Origin: Polymyxa betae A26-41
Taxonomy: Eukaryota; Protista; Endomyxa: Phytomyxea
DNA length: 64,000 bases
Assembly (NCBI GenBank): GCA_003693705.1
Contig: RBZT01000424.1
Coordinates: 1-64,000, forward strand
Reading direction: 5' to 3'
Of this stretch, positions 4,579 through 22,417 are shown one piece after another. The position numbers and the translations under genes were made by a program. Under the pieces are notes generated by a model. That model worked only from the letters and a program-made list of their open reading frames with translations, searched no databases and was not told the origin of the DNA. Each line of letters opens with the position of its first letter. The first letter of the stretch is position 1.

Positions 4579-4821
4579 TTAGTGCTCATGAGTAAGTTTC
4601 GTGCTGCGAGGCGACATATGAACGAGCTTGGCTGGAGGGCGTTCATGGCTCTGGCGATTAACTGCAGGATCATGGGATTTCTTTCCGCTCAAATGATCGT
4701 TGTCCTCATAGTGGGAGACCTTAGGTGGTAGCTCGCAGCCTTGAACTGGGTCATGGTGATATGGGTGGTGTCGATGAGCTGGGTGACGAGCGCCTCCTGC
4801 CATTCTAGCTTTGCCTGCCAT
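4579..4821 (-). CDS. His-rich hypothetical protein (80 aa)
   Basis: Intact ATG-to-stop ORF, His-enriched (HPAHRHHPYHHD), with no recognisable domain or signal peptide. Confidence 0.3.
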   Translation of the reverse strand: MAGKARMAGGARHPAHRHHPYHHDPVQGCELPPKVSHYEDNDHLSGKKSHDPAVNRQSHERPPAKLVHMSPRSTKLTHEH

Positions 4822-6700: not shown

Positions 6701-6951
6701 TACGAGATGGGACTACGGGATCGAGTATGGGAGCGCTACCTACCTGGTGTCCAAGCTCCACTACGGATTTTTTCCAATTTTTCTTCAATTTGTCTTGAAA
6801 GATTTTATTTTTTTTTTGTTTGTAGGTATGTATGCATACCAAAGTGAACTGCATTGTGAAGTGCATTTGCTCTCCAGTCTTGATCAATATTGAATACAGA
6901 GAGAATTGCAACATAAAACGGTCTCAAAAAACACAGTAATTCCTCAGAAAA

Positions 6952-8034
6952 TTAGCTTGAAGCGTTTATTCCTAAACTTGCCAGCTGAAAAAGGAGCCGG
7001 GCAATTTTCAAACCCCCGCTGGCTGATGGCTCTACCCTGTCTATGTAATCGCTGGCGGTCTTGCCATCAAGCGCTTCGAATAGAGGGACCGGAATGATAT
7101 GACTGCCTTCGATCTTGATCTGACTGACAGCAATCTTGAACAACGCTCGAATAGCGCTTTGTAGCTTCACTGGCTTGGTATTATAGCTCAGATATGATAG
7201 AACAGGATCCACCCACCCTCCCTGTTGCTCTTCGGCCGGAAAGTAAATCATGCCTGAACATCTCGATCAGTTACATACATACATCACTCGCTATAACGAT
7301 ATGTCTAACAAACGAGAATCTCCCTCGGTCGTGTTTTAGAGGTTAGTCTTTCTATGTAATTCTGGAGGTCATCTTTAAACATACGAACGAAATGCTTCAT
7401 CCCCCAGCAATGTTCAGGCTCATTAAGTAGGTCTTCAGCTGAATTGAAATGTATTAGTAAGCTCATGTTATATTTTGTAGCAAGCGTTGAACTTAGAGCT
7501 ACCTAGAATACACAAATGAACAAAAAATTGCTAACTAGAGTTCTGATAGCAAACGCTTACATCATTTCCTCCAACCGATACAACAAGAATATCTTCACGA
7601 CGGAGATTATCTTGAATAAATCGGTCTTGTTGGTTTAGTTGTTTCCGTCTTGATCGCAAAGTTGATTCTTCAACTGCTGCATTTATAGTCACTATTCGAT
7701 GCTGTTCTCCTAAAACATTCAAATGGTAGCTAATATCAGCTACCATAACCGGAGGAGTTAAAATCTCTTTATATGGTCCAAAGGCCGGCTTTCGACGGCC
7801 GTCCCCGCGAATCCAAAATTTGTTATCCAACGACGAGTCACCAGCTAGGAAGATGACTGACGATGCTTGAGGTCCAATCGACTGATAAACCAGTTCGAGA
7901 TCAGCGACGTCGTGACCATGATAGGACTCAACTAAGTGATAAAAGCGTGATGAATCTAGTGATAGATTCATCGACAGACTGATATGACACCCGAGCAGAA
8001 TAACGGCAATATAAAAAAGCACCGTTGCATTCAT
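6952..8034 (-). CDS. Secreted SGNH/GDSL hydrolase-like protein (multi-exon)
   Basis: Signal-like N-terminus, block I FLAGDSSLDN, block III VSVGGND and a C-terminal DYIDRVEPSASGGLKIA. Confidence 0.75.
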
Positions 8035-8175
8035 CGGTTGATTTCATAAACTCAGGTCTGCACAGAGATCAAAAGAGTTGCATATGAGACTGTAGATTTT
8101 GAGTGTCAAGAACTGAACATGCGCCAAAAGCTAACTTTACGGAAAAGACATGAAATGGCAAAACGAGATCAAATT

Positions 8176-10129
8176 TTATTCTACATCGTTGTTCTGAGCT
8201 AGTTCTTTCAGCCTTCTTTCAACGTCCGCAGCCTGCAGAAACAATTAGACCTTTAGTAGGAAAAGTTTGAAAAACTGACCTTGTCTTTTGGATTCACAAT
8301 CAAACTGATTCCAGTTATAAATGAAATACAAAAAATGGCCCAGATGAATATGCTATTCGCCCATATGACTCGGAAGAACCTCAAATAGAAAACCTGGGTC
8401 CCGAATATCGACCTGACATCTGTATTTCGAGCGTATATTTTGAAGCTCAGCACACAGAACTACATCGGATTAAGCCTGATATTGCTGGTAAAGATGAAAA
8501 ACCGACCTGAACAACCGGGATCGTACAGATTAATATAATCCAAGTATTGAAAATGAATGCATTCATCATCGTATTGCCAAGCTCCATTGGGTAGATTTTC
8601 ATCAGCCAAGGAACTCGTAGCCCAACCCTAAATGTGCCTTTGATAGCACAGAGAACCAAATAGAACGAGTACACGCCGAACGCCACCACACCGAACAAAG
8701 AGAAGCCTGGTATCCCTGTATCCAACTCCACGAACATAGTATTGAGGAACGGGTCACCATCTTTTGGCAGAACGTAGTAGCAGATATGGATAAACCACGT
8801 CACCGTTAATATAATTCTGAATACGAGATTGAGTCTTCATGGGAATCAACTGGCAAACAACAACAACAACAACAGGAAGAAATATGAGAGGAGAATTGCA
8901 GATAAAACCAAATGTAAACACTTGTCATAGTAACGTTTCCCGCTCCGAAGTCAGAAAAAAAACAGAAGTGATACCCTATGAGCCCAAAGAGAAGCATAGA
9001 GAAGTACCAGACAGGATTCCCTCCTTTCTGATAATATGACTCCTCTAGAAGGCGTTTCTCCTTCTTGAGGGCGTGAAGTTCGGCTTCGAGTCGATTCTGT
9101 GTTGCCCTGTCGTTACGACGATTCTTTCGGGTGTTGGCTCGATCGAGGTCAGCTTTGCCTTTCTGCAACTCTAGGGCCATTGCCAGCAAGCCACCGGCTT
9201 TCTTCCCGATGGCGATCTTCTGCTTGGCGAATTCGATGGCAGTCATCGGGATGGGTCGCGTTCGAAACTCATTAATCATATCGAAAGGCAGCGAGATGAA
9301 GCCGATTCCACAGAATACTGTAAAGAAAAACCATCCTAAAAACGCCAGCATGGCAGAACAAAACACCAAGAAGGAAACTTGCATAGACCACTGCACATTG
9401 GTCGAATTGCAAACGTCCTAAACGATCGTGAAAAGCATGCTTCTAAATGGGTTTAGACCTACAGTAGACTTTGCGGATAAACTGCCTTTCAGAGGGCATT
9501 TGAGGCTGTTGAAATTTGATCGGGAGGTATCGCTGATGGGCCACGATGATGAAAGCTGACTAACATCGCGATCGATGAGCGTCAGTGGAATCTCGGCGGT
9601 GTCGAAGAAGAGCTTCATGAGGGCGAAGACCATCGCCAAGATGATACAACCGATCAATGTGTATTGCAAGGCAGTGCCTGCTTGTCCTCCCCAAGCTCCA
9701 ACAACTCCACCGTTTCGCTCACTAAAACTGTCTCAGCATTAGGTATTATGGAGCGAGTATTCCATACGGATTGTTATCCGATTCGTAGAAGAAGAACGCG
9801 TAAGGCAGGACGATGGTGACGACGGCGATAATGCAGACGAAAATCCCCTGCCAGAGGATATCCATGCGAAGCCCACCACCGCTGCCAGCTCCATTTGCCA
9901 CATCCAACGGCAGCGCTAAAATTGTCCCGAACGACAGAAACAGGCCAGAGACGACAACACCTCTTGGAAACCATGCCATATTCGCGTCGTCAGGATGCCC
10001 AAATTTGATGAGAATTAAAACACATCCGGCAAGTATGATGAACGATAAGACGACGACGGTGACAATCAGGAACCAGCTCACGCTAGACGAAGCCAAATCC
10101 AAGTTGGACGGTGACGTCGTCGTCACCAT
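8176..10129 (-). CDS. LMBR1/LIMR family membrane protein (multi-exon)
   Basis: HPDDANMAWFPR, ILALPLDVAN, LPYAFFFYES, GFISLPFDMINEFRTRP and YPMELGNTMMNAFIFN motifs, with multiple TM segments. Confidence 0.88.
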
Positions 10130-17322: not shown

Positions 17323-17635
17323 AAACGCTTAATTGAAACTTTCTCCAGAATATTGCGATGCAAAATTGCCACAAACCAGCAGAATTGTTCGTCCGCTTCG
17401 GTATGGGGCGAGAATGTACTGATTGTACTCTGTAAGATACTTCAGTTCTGTTTCCCCAGAATTTACGTATCTTGAATTATTTGAGAGTGAGATTTTTTAG
17501 AGAATTCGGTTAGTTGGAAAATTTGAAGAACTCCGGAGCGGACTGCGCCAATGACCGTAACACTAGCTGATGCCATTCGTGCCAACTGATTGTGCACACC
17601 TCATAGATACTAACAGTCGGGATCCTCAGCTAATC

Positions 17636-18384
17636 ATGGCATCTGCCCAGCCCGAAGTTCAGTTCAAGATCATTCTTGTCGGTGATGGTGGTGTTGGCAA
17701 GACCACCTTCGTCAAGCGCCACTTGACCGGTGAATTTGAGCGTCGTTATATCGCGACCATGGGTGTAGAAGTTCACCCTCTAAAGTTCTCGACCAATTTC
17801 GGTACTATTATCTTCAATGTCTGGGATACCGCCGGCCAGGAAAAGTAGATTACTGCTTTTATGCCCTCTGAACTTCGATCTGATCCCGCTCTGTAGATTC
17901 GGTGGTCTTCGTGATGGTTATTATATTAATGGAAACGCTGCCATCATCATGTTCGATGTCACATCTCGAGTTACCTACCAGAATGTCCCTCAATGGCACC
18001 GAGATCTGACTCGAGTGTGTGAGAACATCCCTATTGTCCTTTGTGGTAACAAGGTCGATGTTAAAGATCGTAAGGTCAAGCCCAAGGCTATCATGTTCCA
18101 CCGCAAGAAGCCAAACATTCAGTAAGAGCTTTACATATCCGTTTTATGGTTATTCTCATCGCTTTGCTAGGTACTACGATGTTTCAGCCAAGTCGAACTA
18201 CAACTTCGAAAAGCCTTTCCTGTGGATCGCCCGACGATTGGTCGGCAACCCGAACCTGGTATTTGTTGAACAGCCCGCTCTGCAGCCCCCAACTGCTCAG
18301 GTTGACCTCAACCTCATGGAGCAGTACAAGCAACAGTTCCAGGAGGCAAATGCTGTCCCGCTTCCAGAGGATGACGATTTTTAA
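17636..18384 (+). CDS. RAN: GTP-binding nuclear protein Ran (3 exons)
   Basis: [42 protein letters not shown] and an acidic tail PEDDDF. Confidence 0.98.
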
Positions 18385-18459: not shown

Positions 18460-20023
18460 TTATTGAATTTCAATTCTGAGATTTGACAATGGTGTCAATT
18501 CCTCTTTCGCCATCAGTTCGATTTCATCGCCTAAAAACGCTTGTAATTCGTCAGCAACTGTTTCAATTGCTTCTTCAATAACGGAGCTTGCTGTGCTATA
18601 AAAAATATTTAGCAAATGGTTTCCGCAAAGCTGATTGCCTTACAGTTCCACCAAATGCTGAGGTAAGATACCAAAGCTTGTATGGAAGCCTTCATTCTTA
18701 CTGCGAACATACTCGTGAAACTGCTGACAGCAAACTTGAGATTCTTCGAGCTTTATAGGTTTTTCGAAATCTGTAGCATCTGGCGTTGTATAACGTGATA
18801 AGATTTGCAACTCAGCTTGGGCTTCAGCCAATAACTGATTGGTTAAGCGAGCAGGTAGATTGGGCGACCGTCTTTCTGTAAACAAATTTCTTGCTATTCG
18901 ATATCTTTCACGATCAAGATCTTCAACTGTGTTACCAACATCCTGGGCAGAACGGTTATCAGACCTGTAATATGTTTAACATGATAGTTGCTGGTTGATT
19001 GACGTAAGACCTCTGCGAATCGTTTGCAGATAGAATCTGTACTGTGTCCGAAAGCAATTCTTCCAAAATGTAATTAGTGAGAGCACAGACTTCCGCATTT
19101 GATAATCTCGATCGAGAGATGTCTTTACGAGTGGTCGAAGTCAAAGTTTTCTCGACTTGGTCAAGCTGATTCAACATCGATTTGGCGAAGTGGGTCGCTT
19201 GACATTCAGCATCAACCACACTGTTCGGTTGATGCATATTTTGTATCGATTGTTGCCCCGTTCGCAAGATATCCTTAATCTAAGCAGAATATTAAGAAGC
19301 CATTATAATTGAGGGAAATTTGTCGGACTCGTTTGTGTGCTGTTTTTATACTTTCTTGTCTTAGATCAGATTCAATGGAACTTTTGCGGTGCTGCTTTGC
19401 CATATCGTGTTTAATGTCGTCCAGAATGAGCTCGGCACGTTTTCTCTCTATTTCAATTTCCGATCCTTGTTTGCATGGGAAATGATCCAGCCCATCATCG
19501 AGTCCATTTTCGAATTTTTTCGCTTCAAGAGCGATTGCAGCCGATATAGCTGCTGATAATGTTGGTTTGGGTTTAGCAGCAGAACTGTCCCTCGCAAAAC
19601 AGTTCTTTTCTTTCGCAGCTCGATTATTGCACAAATTAATGCTGGTAGCCGTCTTACTTGAAGCAGGAGCTGGATGAGCATGAATTTTGGTCTTCACAAC
19701 GGGTCTGATAGAATCGTTGATAATAATTCCATTATTGAGGCTAAACTAACTGCTGATTTAGATGTGAATGTACGAGCCAGGGCGGATTCCCATATCGAAG
19801 CCCTAGCGCGACATCTTCCTGTGCCAGCCTTCAGAAATAAATGAAGCAGTAGAAAGCTTTAATGGCATCGGTACCTCTGACAATGGTTGATTGCAGATGC
19901 TAAATCAAACTGCAGTTGAGGTCTATGCCTTAACAACTCTCTAACTGGTTTATTTCGTTGGGATATGCCCGGGCCTGCAGCTGGTTGATGCGCGTCTACA
20001 TCAATATTATCCTGTGATGTCAT
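18460..20023 (-). CDS. Hypothetical multi-exon protein, Moonraker/KIAA0753-like C-terminus
   Basis: Chain of spliceable minus-strand ORFs. The C-terminus (F.EY...P..LVE..ASSVIEEAIETVADELQAF...EEL) resembles my recollection of the KIAA0753 end. Confidence 0.5.
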
Positions 20024-20085
20024 TACTCATAGAGCAATGAGACTGCAACTGTAACCATAGTCGTTAATGACAGCACATATTGTTG

Positions 20086-20104: not shown

Positions 20105-20183
20105 AAATTCCAGAACAGACACCAAACTAAACACAGCACGAATGAATATGATGGAATCGGCTTTCTCAAGCTTTATGATTAAA

Positions 20184-20547
20184 TCAATCTAATTTAGTCT
20201 TGAAAGATGCTTGGCTGATAGACTCGACTTGACTACGCTGTTTAGATAGCATTCTGTAGGATACCAATAAGGAAAATACAATCACCAGCATCGGGCGAAT
20301 CAATTGCAAGAGGTTGATCGTTCCGGCCCAATATGACGTTAGAGTTAGAATGCAGCACAATAGAAGAGAATGAAAGAGAATGTTTGCAGGCTTTGAGTCA
20401 ATAGCTATGTTCATATGCAGTCTCGGCCAGGCAAAGGAGAGACACAGAAGTGGCGCGATCATTAAGAAGGAAAAAGTAATCGAAAGGAAACAGGATCTTG
20501 ACCTTGCAGGAGTTTCTCGATGCTGATATGTGATTGATGGGTTCGGC
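20184..20547 (-). CDS. Duplicated, diverged RPN2/SWP1 terminal exon (putative alternative last exon B)
   Basis: Acceptor catttcag|G at 20548/20547 is in the same phase as exon A. It has 3 TM segments colinear with exon A and ends KTKLD*. Confidence 0.75.
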
Positions 20548-20626
20548 CTGAAATGATAGTGTTTAGAAACATGCGAAAGCAAAAGCATAAATAAGTGAAT
20601 TGGTAATGTATTTAAAGAATGGAGTC

Positions 20627-21758
20627 TCAGTCATGTTTGGGTTTAGCAATGGAGCGCCGGGAACGCAGAGCTCGGTTTCCGACAACAATGGTAAAAGGAG
20701 CAAGTACCATGAGCCATTTCGCCAAATCAAACAAAGTCATTTTGACCCAATATACAGTTAAGATAACAAAAATCGCGGCTAGATATGCATGGAACAGAAA
20801 TCCCCACATTCCGGGAGCTGAAACACGAAGCCCGATACATTTCCAAGTAGGAATAAGCATAATTAAGGGTATTGCAAGAATTACAGTAAATATAAAAGAC
20901 AATATCGGATGGCATCGCGATTCATTGGGACGAAAAATATGACGAATCTCAGGTTTTTTCCTATTGTAAAACATTAATGAAACCACCAAAAACGAAAAGG
21001 CATTGGTAAAGAAATCAAGAGAAACAGAGAGAACAAGTAAACAGAATGTTTACACTTACATGTGAATAAGATCAGACGCTAATCTAACAGCACCGGGTAG
21101 TCTTGCGAGGTTGATGTTTGCTTGGCAAACATTCCAGTCGATATATGTGGGAAGTTGAGGATCGCTAATAAGCAACTTTATCTGATACCTTCCTGCGAAA
21201 ATGAAACAGCGACCTTTAACCCCAATTATGAAACGAAGCATAGCTCTTACCATTTCCGGGTACACGGCTAGAGAATGTGGAATGAGTATATTTCAGTTTT
21301 AACTGGTAGTTACCACTGGCTCGTTTAGTTGGAGTAAGAACAACATGCTTAATAGTGTCCAAATTCAACAATGCTACGCCAATATAGGCGATATCGTCAA
21401 GATTACTGTTCAGCTTAAAAGCAAAATGAACATGTGTGGATGGCGCTGTAATTTCCAGAACGTCGTCGCTTTCATTCGGATACGATGTCCTGAATATGAA
21501 ATTTATAAAACGGCAGTGATGACCACGGCGAACCTACGTGATAGAGCTGATAGAATCTTCATGTTTAGTTGATGTCCATGCTTTAAACTGTGACAGCTCA
21601 ACGACACCATTTGCAGCAGATGCAATTTTCTGTGAATCGTCGTAGCCTTGGGAATTGATTTTGTCGGAAATCTCTATTTTGCTAGCCAAATCCTGGGGCG
21701 AGATCGGCTGCAACTCAATAGCTAGGATAAAAGTGATGACGACGAATATGGCCTTCAT
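20627..21758 (-). CDS. RPN2: Oligosaccharyltransferase subunit ribophorin II / Swp1 (short form, multi-exon)
   Basis: Signal peptide MKAIFVVITFILA, the KPEIRHIFRP motif, three C-terminal TM helices (FLFHAYL, YWVKMTLFD, GNRALR) and a KPKHD* tail. Confidence 0.88.
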
Positions 21759-21914
21759 CGCTATAATAGATAAATGTCGCTATAAAGAGAGGAGCACTTC
21801 TGGTCCCAAGCTCATCACATAGGTGATTACGCTACATCGCCAGTGATTTCTCCCGATCCGTGACATACATACATAGAAATGGCCAATGATAATTACGTGT
21901 TGGTTTTATATCAA

Positions 21915-22233
21915 TCAGTGTAAAAGTGTATCAATAAGCCCAAAATGGCCATGATGATGATCGGGGTTACCGCTCCCATATCTATGGGAGTGATGATCGT
22001 GGCTTTCGTGAACATGATCAGAACCGAAATAGTCATGACTGCATAGGAAAGTTAATTGGGATGTTGTTGATTCTACTAGTTCCTTACTGGTCGTGATCAA
22101 TATCGTCGTGGTCGTCGTCATCCTCATCGTAATGGCGGTCCATGCCCCCGAAACCCCATCCCGCTGAAAACGATCGTGAAATCATCGTCAACAGAAGCAC
22201 TGCCACCAGCACAATTGGAGAGGAGAATTGCAT
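21915..22233 (-). CDS. Small secreted His/Asp-rich protein (2 exons; intron 22039-22087)
   Basis: MQFSSPIVLVAVLLLTMISRSFSA-GWGFGGMDRHYDEDDDDHDDIDHDHHDYFGSDHVHESHDHHSHRYGSGNPDHHHGHFGLIDTLLH*. Confidence 0.75.
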
Positions 22234-22417
22234 TTGGAATTGTTTCAAACCATTCTGCAGTGACTCAGTCCCTTGATTAAAGTTCCGGAACGCTGGACAT
22301 TTGAAAAGATGAATGGCGCGAAATGCTGAAAAACTTGTTTCTTTTATCTCAAAATTTATGTGAACAGCAATGTTATTCGTCCGAGAGAGACTTCAGTTGT
22401 TCATTGTTTTTGCTGTT

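Follow-up and report, generated by a model that had tools for sequence, protein, structure and literature searches.

RPN2/Swp1 is an essential subunit of the oligosaccharyltransferase (OST) in yeast (PMC7226087). Known members of the family belong to OST subcomplex III (PF25147, PF23860; PDB 6s7o_F, 6c26_C, 8agb_F) and consist of a signal peptide, an Ig-like luminal domain, a linker, three transmembrane (TM) helices and a short cytosolic tail. In yeast, the three Swp1 helices together with Ost2 pack around the Wbp1 helix and touch lipids at the Stt3 interface (PMC7226087), and subcomplex III holds a pocket for the terminal glucoses of the donor (PMC9701220). In simulations, the glycan on Stt3 N539 lies against the backbone of Swp1 H181 (PMC13747012). 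OST isoforms are known to arise from paralogous genes, namely Ost3/Ost6 in yeast and STT3A/STT3B with DC2/KCP2 or MAGT1/TUSC3 in human (PMC7226087). A different source of protein variants has been described for the human genome, where 77 C-terminal substitutions originate from tandem exon duplication, including those of GNAO1, NECTIN2 and the plasma membrane Ca-ATPases (PMC8373072).

Here we describe an RPN2/Swp1 gene in a window of 64,000 nucleotides from the plasmodiophorid Polymyxa betae A26-41 (contig RBZT01000424.1, positions 1 to 64,000), to which all coordinates refer unless another sequence is named. Its domain order resembles that of the known RPN2/Swp1 proteins but, unlike these, the gene carries the whole linker-plus-TM block twice, in two apparently alternative copies that we term terminal exons A and B.

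Structure of the gene and identity of its terminal exons

The layout of the gene is given in Table 1. Exons 1-3 sum to 593 nt, so that the shared donor at 21059 (CAC AT/gtaagt on the - strand, the slash marking the splice site) is in phase 2; the acceptors of A (first exon base 20960) and B (first exon base 20547) are both in phase 2 as well. Translation would give 308 aa for the A form and 318 aa for the B form, neither of them interrupted by a stop; the exons were joined only for this local check of frame and length, and homology searches were run exon by exon. The spacer preceding B contains a TCTAAA motif, a pyrimidine tract and a final TTCAG, and the sole AG within it is the acceptor itself. 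A sequence-only reading of this DNA had described the donor, the two acceptors, their phase, the stops and the dilysine tails, and had pointed to an unusually long intron before A. All these features were found on the - strand, and the intron in question measures 99 nt in transcript contigs, against 46, 48 and 58 nt at the other joints.

Table 1. Features of the P. betae RPN2/Swp1 locus (window coordinates)
Feature	Position	Strand	Description
RPN2/Swp1 exon 1	21538..21758	-	Signal peptide and start of luminal domain
Exon 2	21251..21489	-	Luminal domain; 46% identity to P. brassicae RPN2
Exon 3	21060..21192	-	End of Ribophorin II third domain; shared phase-2 donor at its 3' end
Intron before exon A	20961..21059	-	99 nt, T-rich (51% T)
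Terminal exon A	20627..20960	-	Canonical EIxHxFR linker, three TM helices, KPKHD then stop; junction present in RNA
Spacer	20548..20626	-	79 nt from the stop of A to the acceptor of B; apparent short 3' UTR of the A mRNA and 3' splice-site region of B
Terminal exon B	20184..20547	-	Divergent linker (His to Tyr), three TM helices, longer tail ending in KTKLD; transcribed

Both terminal exons pass the 27-bit cut-off of Pfam family PF25147 (Ribophorin_II_C), exon A with 68.7 bits (E 7.5e-19) and exon B with 38.4 bits (E 2e-9), and they are the sole two matches to this family in the P. betae genome. The RPN2 identity proposed earlier for both exons is thus borne out, including by the profile search of exon B against the Ribophorin II family that had been suggested as a check. 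A and B are colinear with 31% identity, their homology begins at the splice acceptor, and both match human RPN2 residues about 523-625. Each displays three hydropathy peaks before its tail (KPKHD in A, KTKLD in B), and an AF2 model of exon B consists of three helices. Fold searches with this isolated model returned generic helical matches only, among which RPN2 (Z 6.0) did not stand out from many others of equal score, and are uninformative; the B form of Plasmodiophora brassicae has an RPN2-like predicted fold (Foldseek E 2.6e-16). Further upstream, Ribophorin_II_3rd (PF23860) matches exon 3 alone weakly (E 0.021), and exons 2-3 share 46-49% identity with the P. brassicae protein, itself above the PF23860 cut-off. 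The gene belongs to the RPN2/Swp1 family. We note in passing that the ribophorin II proteins of Coemansia (P0103 cluster) are called "proteasome regulatory particle base subunit" at NCBI, probably by confusion with the RPN2 gene of the proteasome.

Exon B is the more divergent of the two, with lower scores against RPN2 profiles than A, long branches and the loss of several conserved residues. The linker motif EIxHxFR is present in A and in its P. brassicae counterpart, A', but not in B or B', in which the His is replaced and further positions have drifted. This His, at the position of yeast H182, is retained in 99% of 148 other homologues as well as in A and A', whereas B carries Tyr and B' carries Phe.

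At its other end, the P. betae protein is Swp1-like in length, with 308 aa compared with 603 aa for P. brassicae RPN2, of which about 300 N-terminal residues are absent (21758-21538, - strand, versus L003:5001-6275). RPN2 transcript contigs start at 21801-21835, and this 5' end together with the signal peptide indicates that the shortening is a real truncation. Searches for the missing N-terminal domains elsewhere in the P. betae genome, run without a positive control, did not find them. Several neighboring genes were also recognized. Just upstream of RPN2 lies a small secreted His/Asp-rich gene with no Pfam match (21880-22248, - strand), over which contigs cover 21880-22038 at RPN2-like depth and continue as spliced loose ends. 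The transcript of the downstream gene begins near 20024-20046, approximately 110 nt past the point where the long RPN2 transcript ends, and contigs from three runs confirm a 46-nt intron in it (19829-19874, - strand). A Ran-like small GTPase gene with short introns, recognized from ORF translations, occupies 17570-18384 on the + strand.

The Plasmodiophora brassicae counterpart and the age of the duplication

Profile searches retrieved one plasmodiophorid cluster, that of P. brassicae, the source of the closest related protein in these searches; queries with exon A and the P. brassicae pieces yielded no plasmodiophorid besides P. brassicae, two metagenome scans were blank, and an Atlas search gave no usable match. 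The P. brassicae gene (L003, CP145411.1) displays the same layout of donor, 108-nt intron, A', 127-nt spacer and B', with both exons intact and in the same phase; exon 3 ends at position 6748 of L003, and A' and B' begin at 6857 and 7321. Here too the intron preceding the proximal exon is long, 108 nt versus 50-60 nt for the other introns of the gene; the published mean intron length for this genome is 60. Scores against PF25147 are 71.6 bits for A' and 61.4 bits for B'. In both species the B acceptor ends in TTCAG and has TCTAAA approximately 18 nt upstream. All four tails carry a KxKxx or KKxx dilysine signal and a final Asp, and B and B' share a tail that is roughly 8 residues longer.

Genes flanking RPN2 are not syntenic between the two species. 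The gene is identical in all four P. brassicae loci (L003 and three more), which therefore allow no polymorphism test. Downstream of P. brassicae RPN2, a small ORF at L003:9280-9435 gives a weak tblastx match (E 1.7e-6) to window positions 4594-4752, 16 kb away from the P. betae gene, possibly reflecting a shared small gene family. The same downstream region contains a duplicated segment of about 1 kb (L003:9599-10646 versus 7586-8665, 94% identity).

Public annotations of the P. brassicae locus disagree on the C-terminus of RPN2, and the two-exon layout explains why. Of the three NCBI proteins at this locus, CEO96647.1 and SPQ94705.1 end in A', and XXQ31552.1 ends in B', its gene model joining exon 3 to B' through a 572-nt intron. 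This last model belongs to the Pb3A assembly, whose BRAKER3 annotation drew on protein evidence and on RNA-seq at 7, 16, 21 and 26 dpi and comprises 10,521 genes with 12,590 transcripts (10.1101/2024.04.03.587992). In our judgment, a predictor would be unlikely to pass over a good proximal exon and accept an intron ten times as long as usual unless a hint supported it. An A' transcript may be part of the Pb3A annotation too, as XXQ31552.1 is the longest product of the gene. The gene does not appear in the supplements published with the P. brassicae genome.

Comparison of the four exons offers a view of the forces acting on B. Identity between the species is 43% for A and A' and 31-32% for B and B', within-species A-B identity is 31-35%, and similarity scores for A-B' exceed those for B-B'. 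The B-B' alignment (32% aa identity, z 12) contains 37 identical residues, 22 of which are encoded by different codons. Nucleotide identity at codon positions 1/2/3 amounts to 0.53/0.76/0.33 for A-A' and 0.41/0.59/0.28 for B-B', and third positions are close to saturation between P. betae and P. brassicae. After nucleotide shuffling, the chance of a stop-free B is 0.3% in P. betae and 0.8% in P. brassicae (frames of 119-120 codons). That stops are absent and the dilysine tails kept despite nearly saturated third positions argues that B is under selection as a protein. By these sequence comparisons, B is a selected coding sequence that evolves faster than A. Neutral decay of B in relatives, which the sequence-only reading had set against its own proposal, is not what we find: B' is intact, and purifying selection is supported. 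The exon duplication that it had put forward is upheld by the homology and colinearity of A and B and by the retention of the two-exon layout in P. brassicae.

A quartet tree favors the grouping (A,A')(B,B') with a bp-RELL of 0.87, although AU tests reject no topology, (A,B)(A',B') having p 0.146 in the quartet; a tree of 58 sequences gave no resolution. Most likely, as judged from the two species compared, the tandem duplication of the terminal exon predates the Polymyxa/Plasmodiophora split.

Transcript evidence and competing explanations

The junction from exon 3 to A is seen in transcript contigs from three runs (X4, X5 and X6; two studies); a fourth run, X2, covers exon 1 only. All introns are removed in the contigs of X4, X5 and X6, with those of 48, 58 and 99 nt evident, so that these contigs must come from spliced RNA. 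None of the X4, X5 and X6 contigs contains the joint from 21060 to 20547 that would connect exon 3 to B. A is hence the dominant form in the sampled RNA, and absence of the B junction is not implied, as contigs drop rare variants.

The contigs differ in how they treat B. X4 and X5 each provide one contig that runs from exon 1 through A and the spacer into unspliced B, ending at 20153 or 20195, which means that the A mRNA can carry B within its 3' UTR. The main contig of X6 (depth 37.7) ends at 20599, 28 nt past the stop of A. In the same run, B is found on a detached contig (20529-20168) with a depth of 3.7, approximately one tenth of the main contig, depth being a rough guide only; its start misses the acceptor by 18 nt, so that it is compatible with both routes, B spliced to exon 3 and B carried behind A. 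The contig 3' ends near 20599 (X6) and at 20153-20195 fit two poly(A) sites, although contigs cannot show RNA ends.

Taken with the sequence evidence, these data are probably best explained by A and B being alternative last exons derived from an old exon duplication, with A dominant and B minor or conditional. B might instead be a small gene in its own right, coding from ATG 20588 for a TM-only paralogue of RPN2 (134 aa); expressed from its own start or by reinitiation on the long A+B transcript, this product would serve as a stand-alone accessory or competitor subunit. An in-frame ATG indeed precedes the B acceptor in both species, by 14 codons in P. betae, where it falls within the spacer, and by 5 in P. 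brassicae; long transcripts carrying A and B unspliced, and the detached low-depth B contig of X6, would also suit such a gene. However, neither the position of the ATG nor the leader peptide is conserved, and the P. brassicae ATG lies inside a branch-like motif. The homology starts exactly at a splice acceptor whose phase fits the donor in both species, and the P. brassicae annotation splices into B'. Furthermore, only 39 nt separate the stop of A from ATG 20588, so that a promoter would fall inside the coding sequence of A. We therefore regard a separate gene as unlikely. More improbable still is a dead or nearly dead duplicate lying in the 3' UTR and spliced at noise level at most. The A junction is the only one seen, and the low profile scores, long branches and lost residues of B point in this direction, but stop-free frames of such length exist in two genera between which third positions are saturated, identity across codon positions follows the pattern expected under selection, and the TM pattern, dilysine tail and acceptor are conserved, all of which speaks against it.

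Two further explanations seem to us highly improbable, and to a similar degree. B could be reached through a donor inside A, yielding a chimeric anchor, or through recoding at the stop of A, yielding a six-helix product; in P. betae the B frame is in fact open across the entire spacer, from within the last codons of A (148 aa). In P. brassicae, however, a stop closes the B' frame six codons before the acceptor, the phase-2 GT sites within A are poor donors, and no such joint occurs in the contigs. The pair could also stem from independent duplications in the two genera that converged on one layout, whether in alternative use or otherwise, a scenario left room by the unrejected (A,B)(A',B') topology and by a B-B' identity no higher than that of A-B'. 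Against it stand the exon order, the long intron, the acceptor motif and the longer tail, all common to both species, and an A-A' identity far above that of A and B within either species.

Probable alternative last exons in relation to known systems

If A and B are alternative last exons, the locus would work as follows. A block comprising the linker, three TM helices and the ER-retrieval tail would have been duplicated in tandem, with both copies kept coding. In the default path, which is the one observed, the exon-3 donor joins the proximal acceptor to give the canonical subunit, and the A mRNA appears to end either just after A or after B, which it would then carry as silent 3' UTR. Two poly(A) sites would be in use, the proximal one behind A and the distal one behind B. 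In transcripts not cleaved at the former, the donor could skip 512 nt to the acceptor of B, yielding the same luminal domain on anchor B. Such use of the distal acceptor would be confined to a minority of transcripts or to a particular stage. Both species have a T-rich intron of double length ahead of the proximal exon, and this may weaken or regulate the acceptor of that exon. A Dscam-like loop-out was considered as well, but in neither species does the RNA of the long intron pair with that of the spacer any better than shuffled sequences do, and 6-7-mers shared among introns and spacers as a regulatory motif occur at chance level only.

The proposal of two OST isoforms generated by alternative splicing and polyadenylation is thus sustained in part: RPN2 identity, the duplication and the P. 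brassicae B' model favor it, and the junction into 20547 is absent from the contigs. The term "mutually exclusive", which the sequence-only reading had applied to the exons, designates the wrong class. Strictly mutually exclusive exons are internal, with exactly one retained (PMC8373072), whereas A and B are both terminal, and the A mRNAs of X4 and X5 carry B unspliced. The fitting class would be that of alternative last exons, combining an alternative 3' acceptor with poly(A) choice.

A genome search detected one locus each for STT3, OST48, DAD1 and RPN1, so that anchor B would most likely join the same OST complex. Alignment maps H181 and H182 of Swp1 to the first residues of the swapped exon, and the STT3 glycosylation sequon is kept in the P. 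betae genome. The STT3 motif itself (L017:3179; G000:C839) reads DNNTRNNTH rather than DNNTWNNTH, with the glycosylated sequon intact. Going by the yeast structures, anchor B would change the segment packed around the OST48/Wbp1 helix as well as the linker strand beside the structural N-glycan of STT3, giving a second isoform of OST in which assembly, stability or donor handling differs. The simplest reading of this analysis would be that the B form is a second form of a single OST complex in which the packing of subcomplex III or the handling of the donor is altered; a role of the B form outside OST is possible. More speculatively, plasmodiophorids might use regulated last-exon choice to switch the RPN2 anchor and the linker facing the STT3 glycan, obtaining a stage-specific second OST of different donor selectivity or activity from one set of OST genes. 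We put this forward tentatively, as a somewhat doubtful extension.

The role of the RPN2 TM block is poorly understood, and a natural pair of forms with an identical luminal domain, maintained in two genera, would constitute a ready-made test of this block and of the linker His. The locus also appears to represent a conserved regulated splicing event in plasmodiophorids, which are crop parasites and virus vectors. A literature search with partial coverage returned nothing on alternative splicing in this group, and no such arrangement for RPN2 or another OST subunit, which is weak evidence of novelty.

The class of mechanism is already known, and what may be new, as far as this partial literature tells, is its occurrence in an OST subunit. 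As in the human C-terminal substitutions, homologous 3' coding exons would be swapped by alternative poly(A) and acceptor choice, the arrangement is old and conserved, and NECTIN2 likewise swaps a TM-containing region (PMC8373072); RPN2 is not named in the main text of that study. Unlike the human cases, the present one concerns a core OST subunit, and it occurs in a rhizarian parasite whose genome is compact, its introns measuring approximately 50-60 nt. Like the paralogue-based OST isoforms (PMC7226087), it would provide two OST variants differing in one subunit. Those isoforms, however, rely on separate genes and concern subcomplex II, whereas here one gene would swap the anchor of subcomplex III around a single-copy STT3. 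If this holds true, OST isoforms can be made by splicing of a subcomplex III subunit instead of from paralogous genes.
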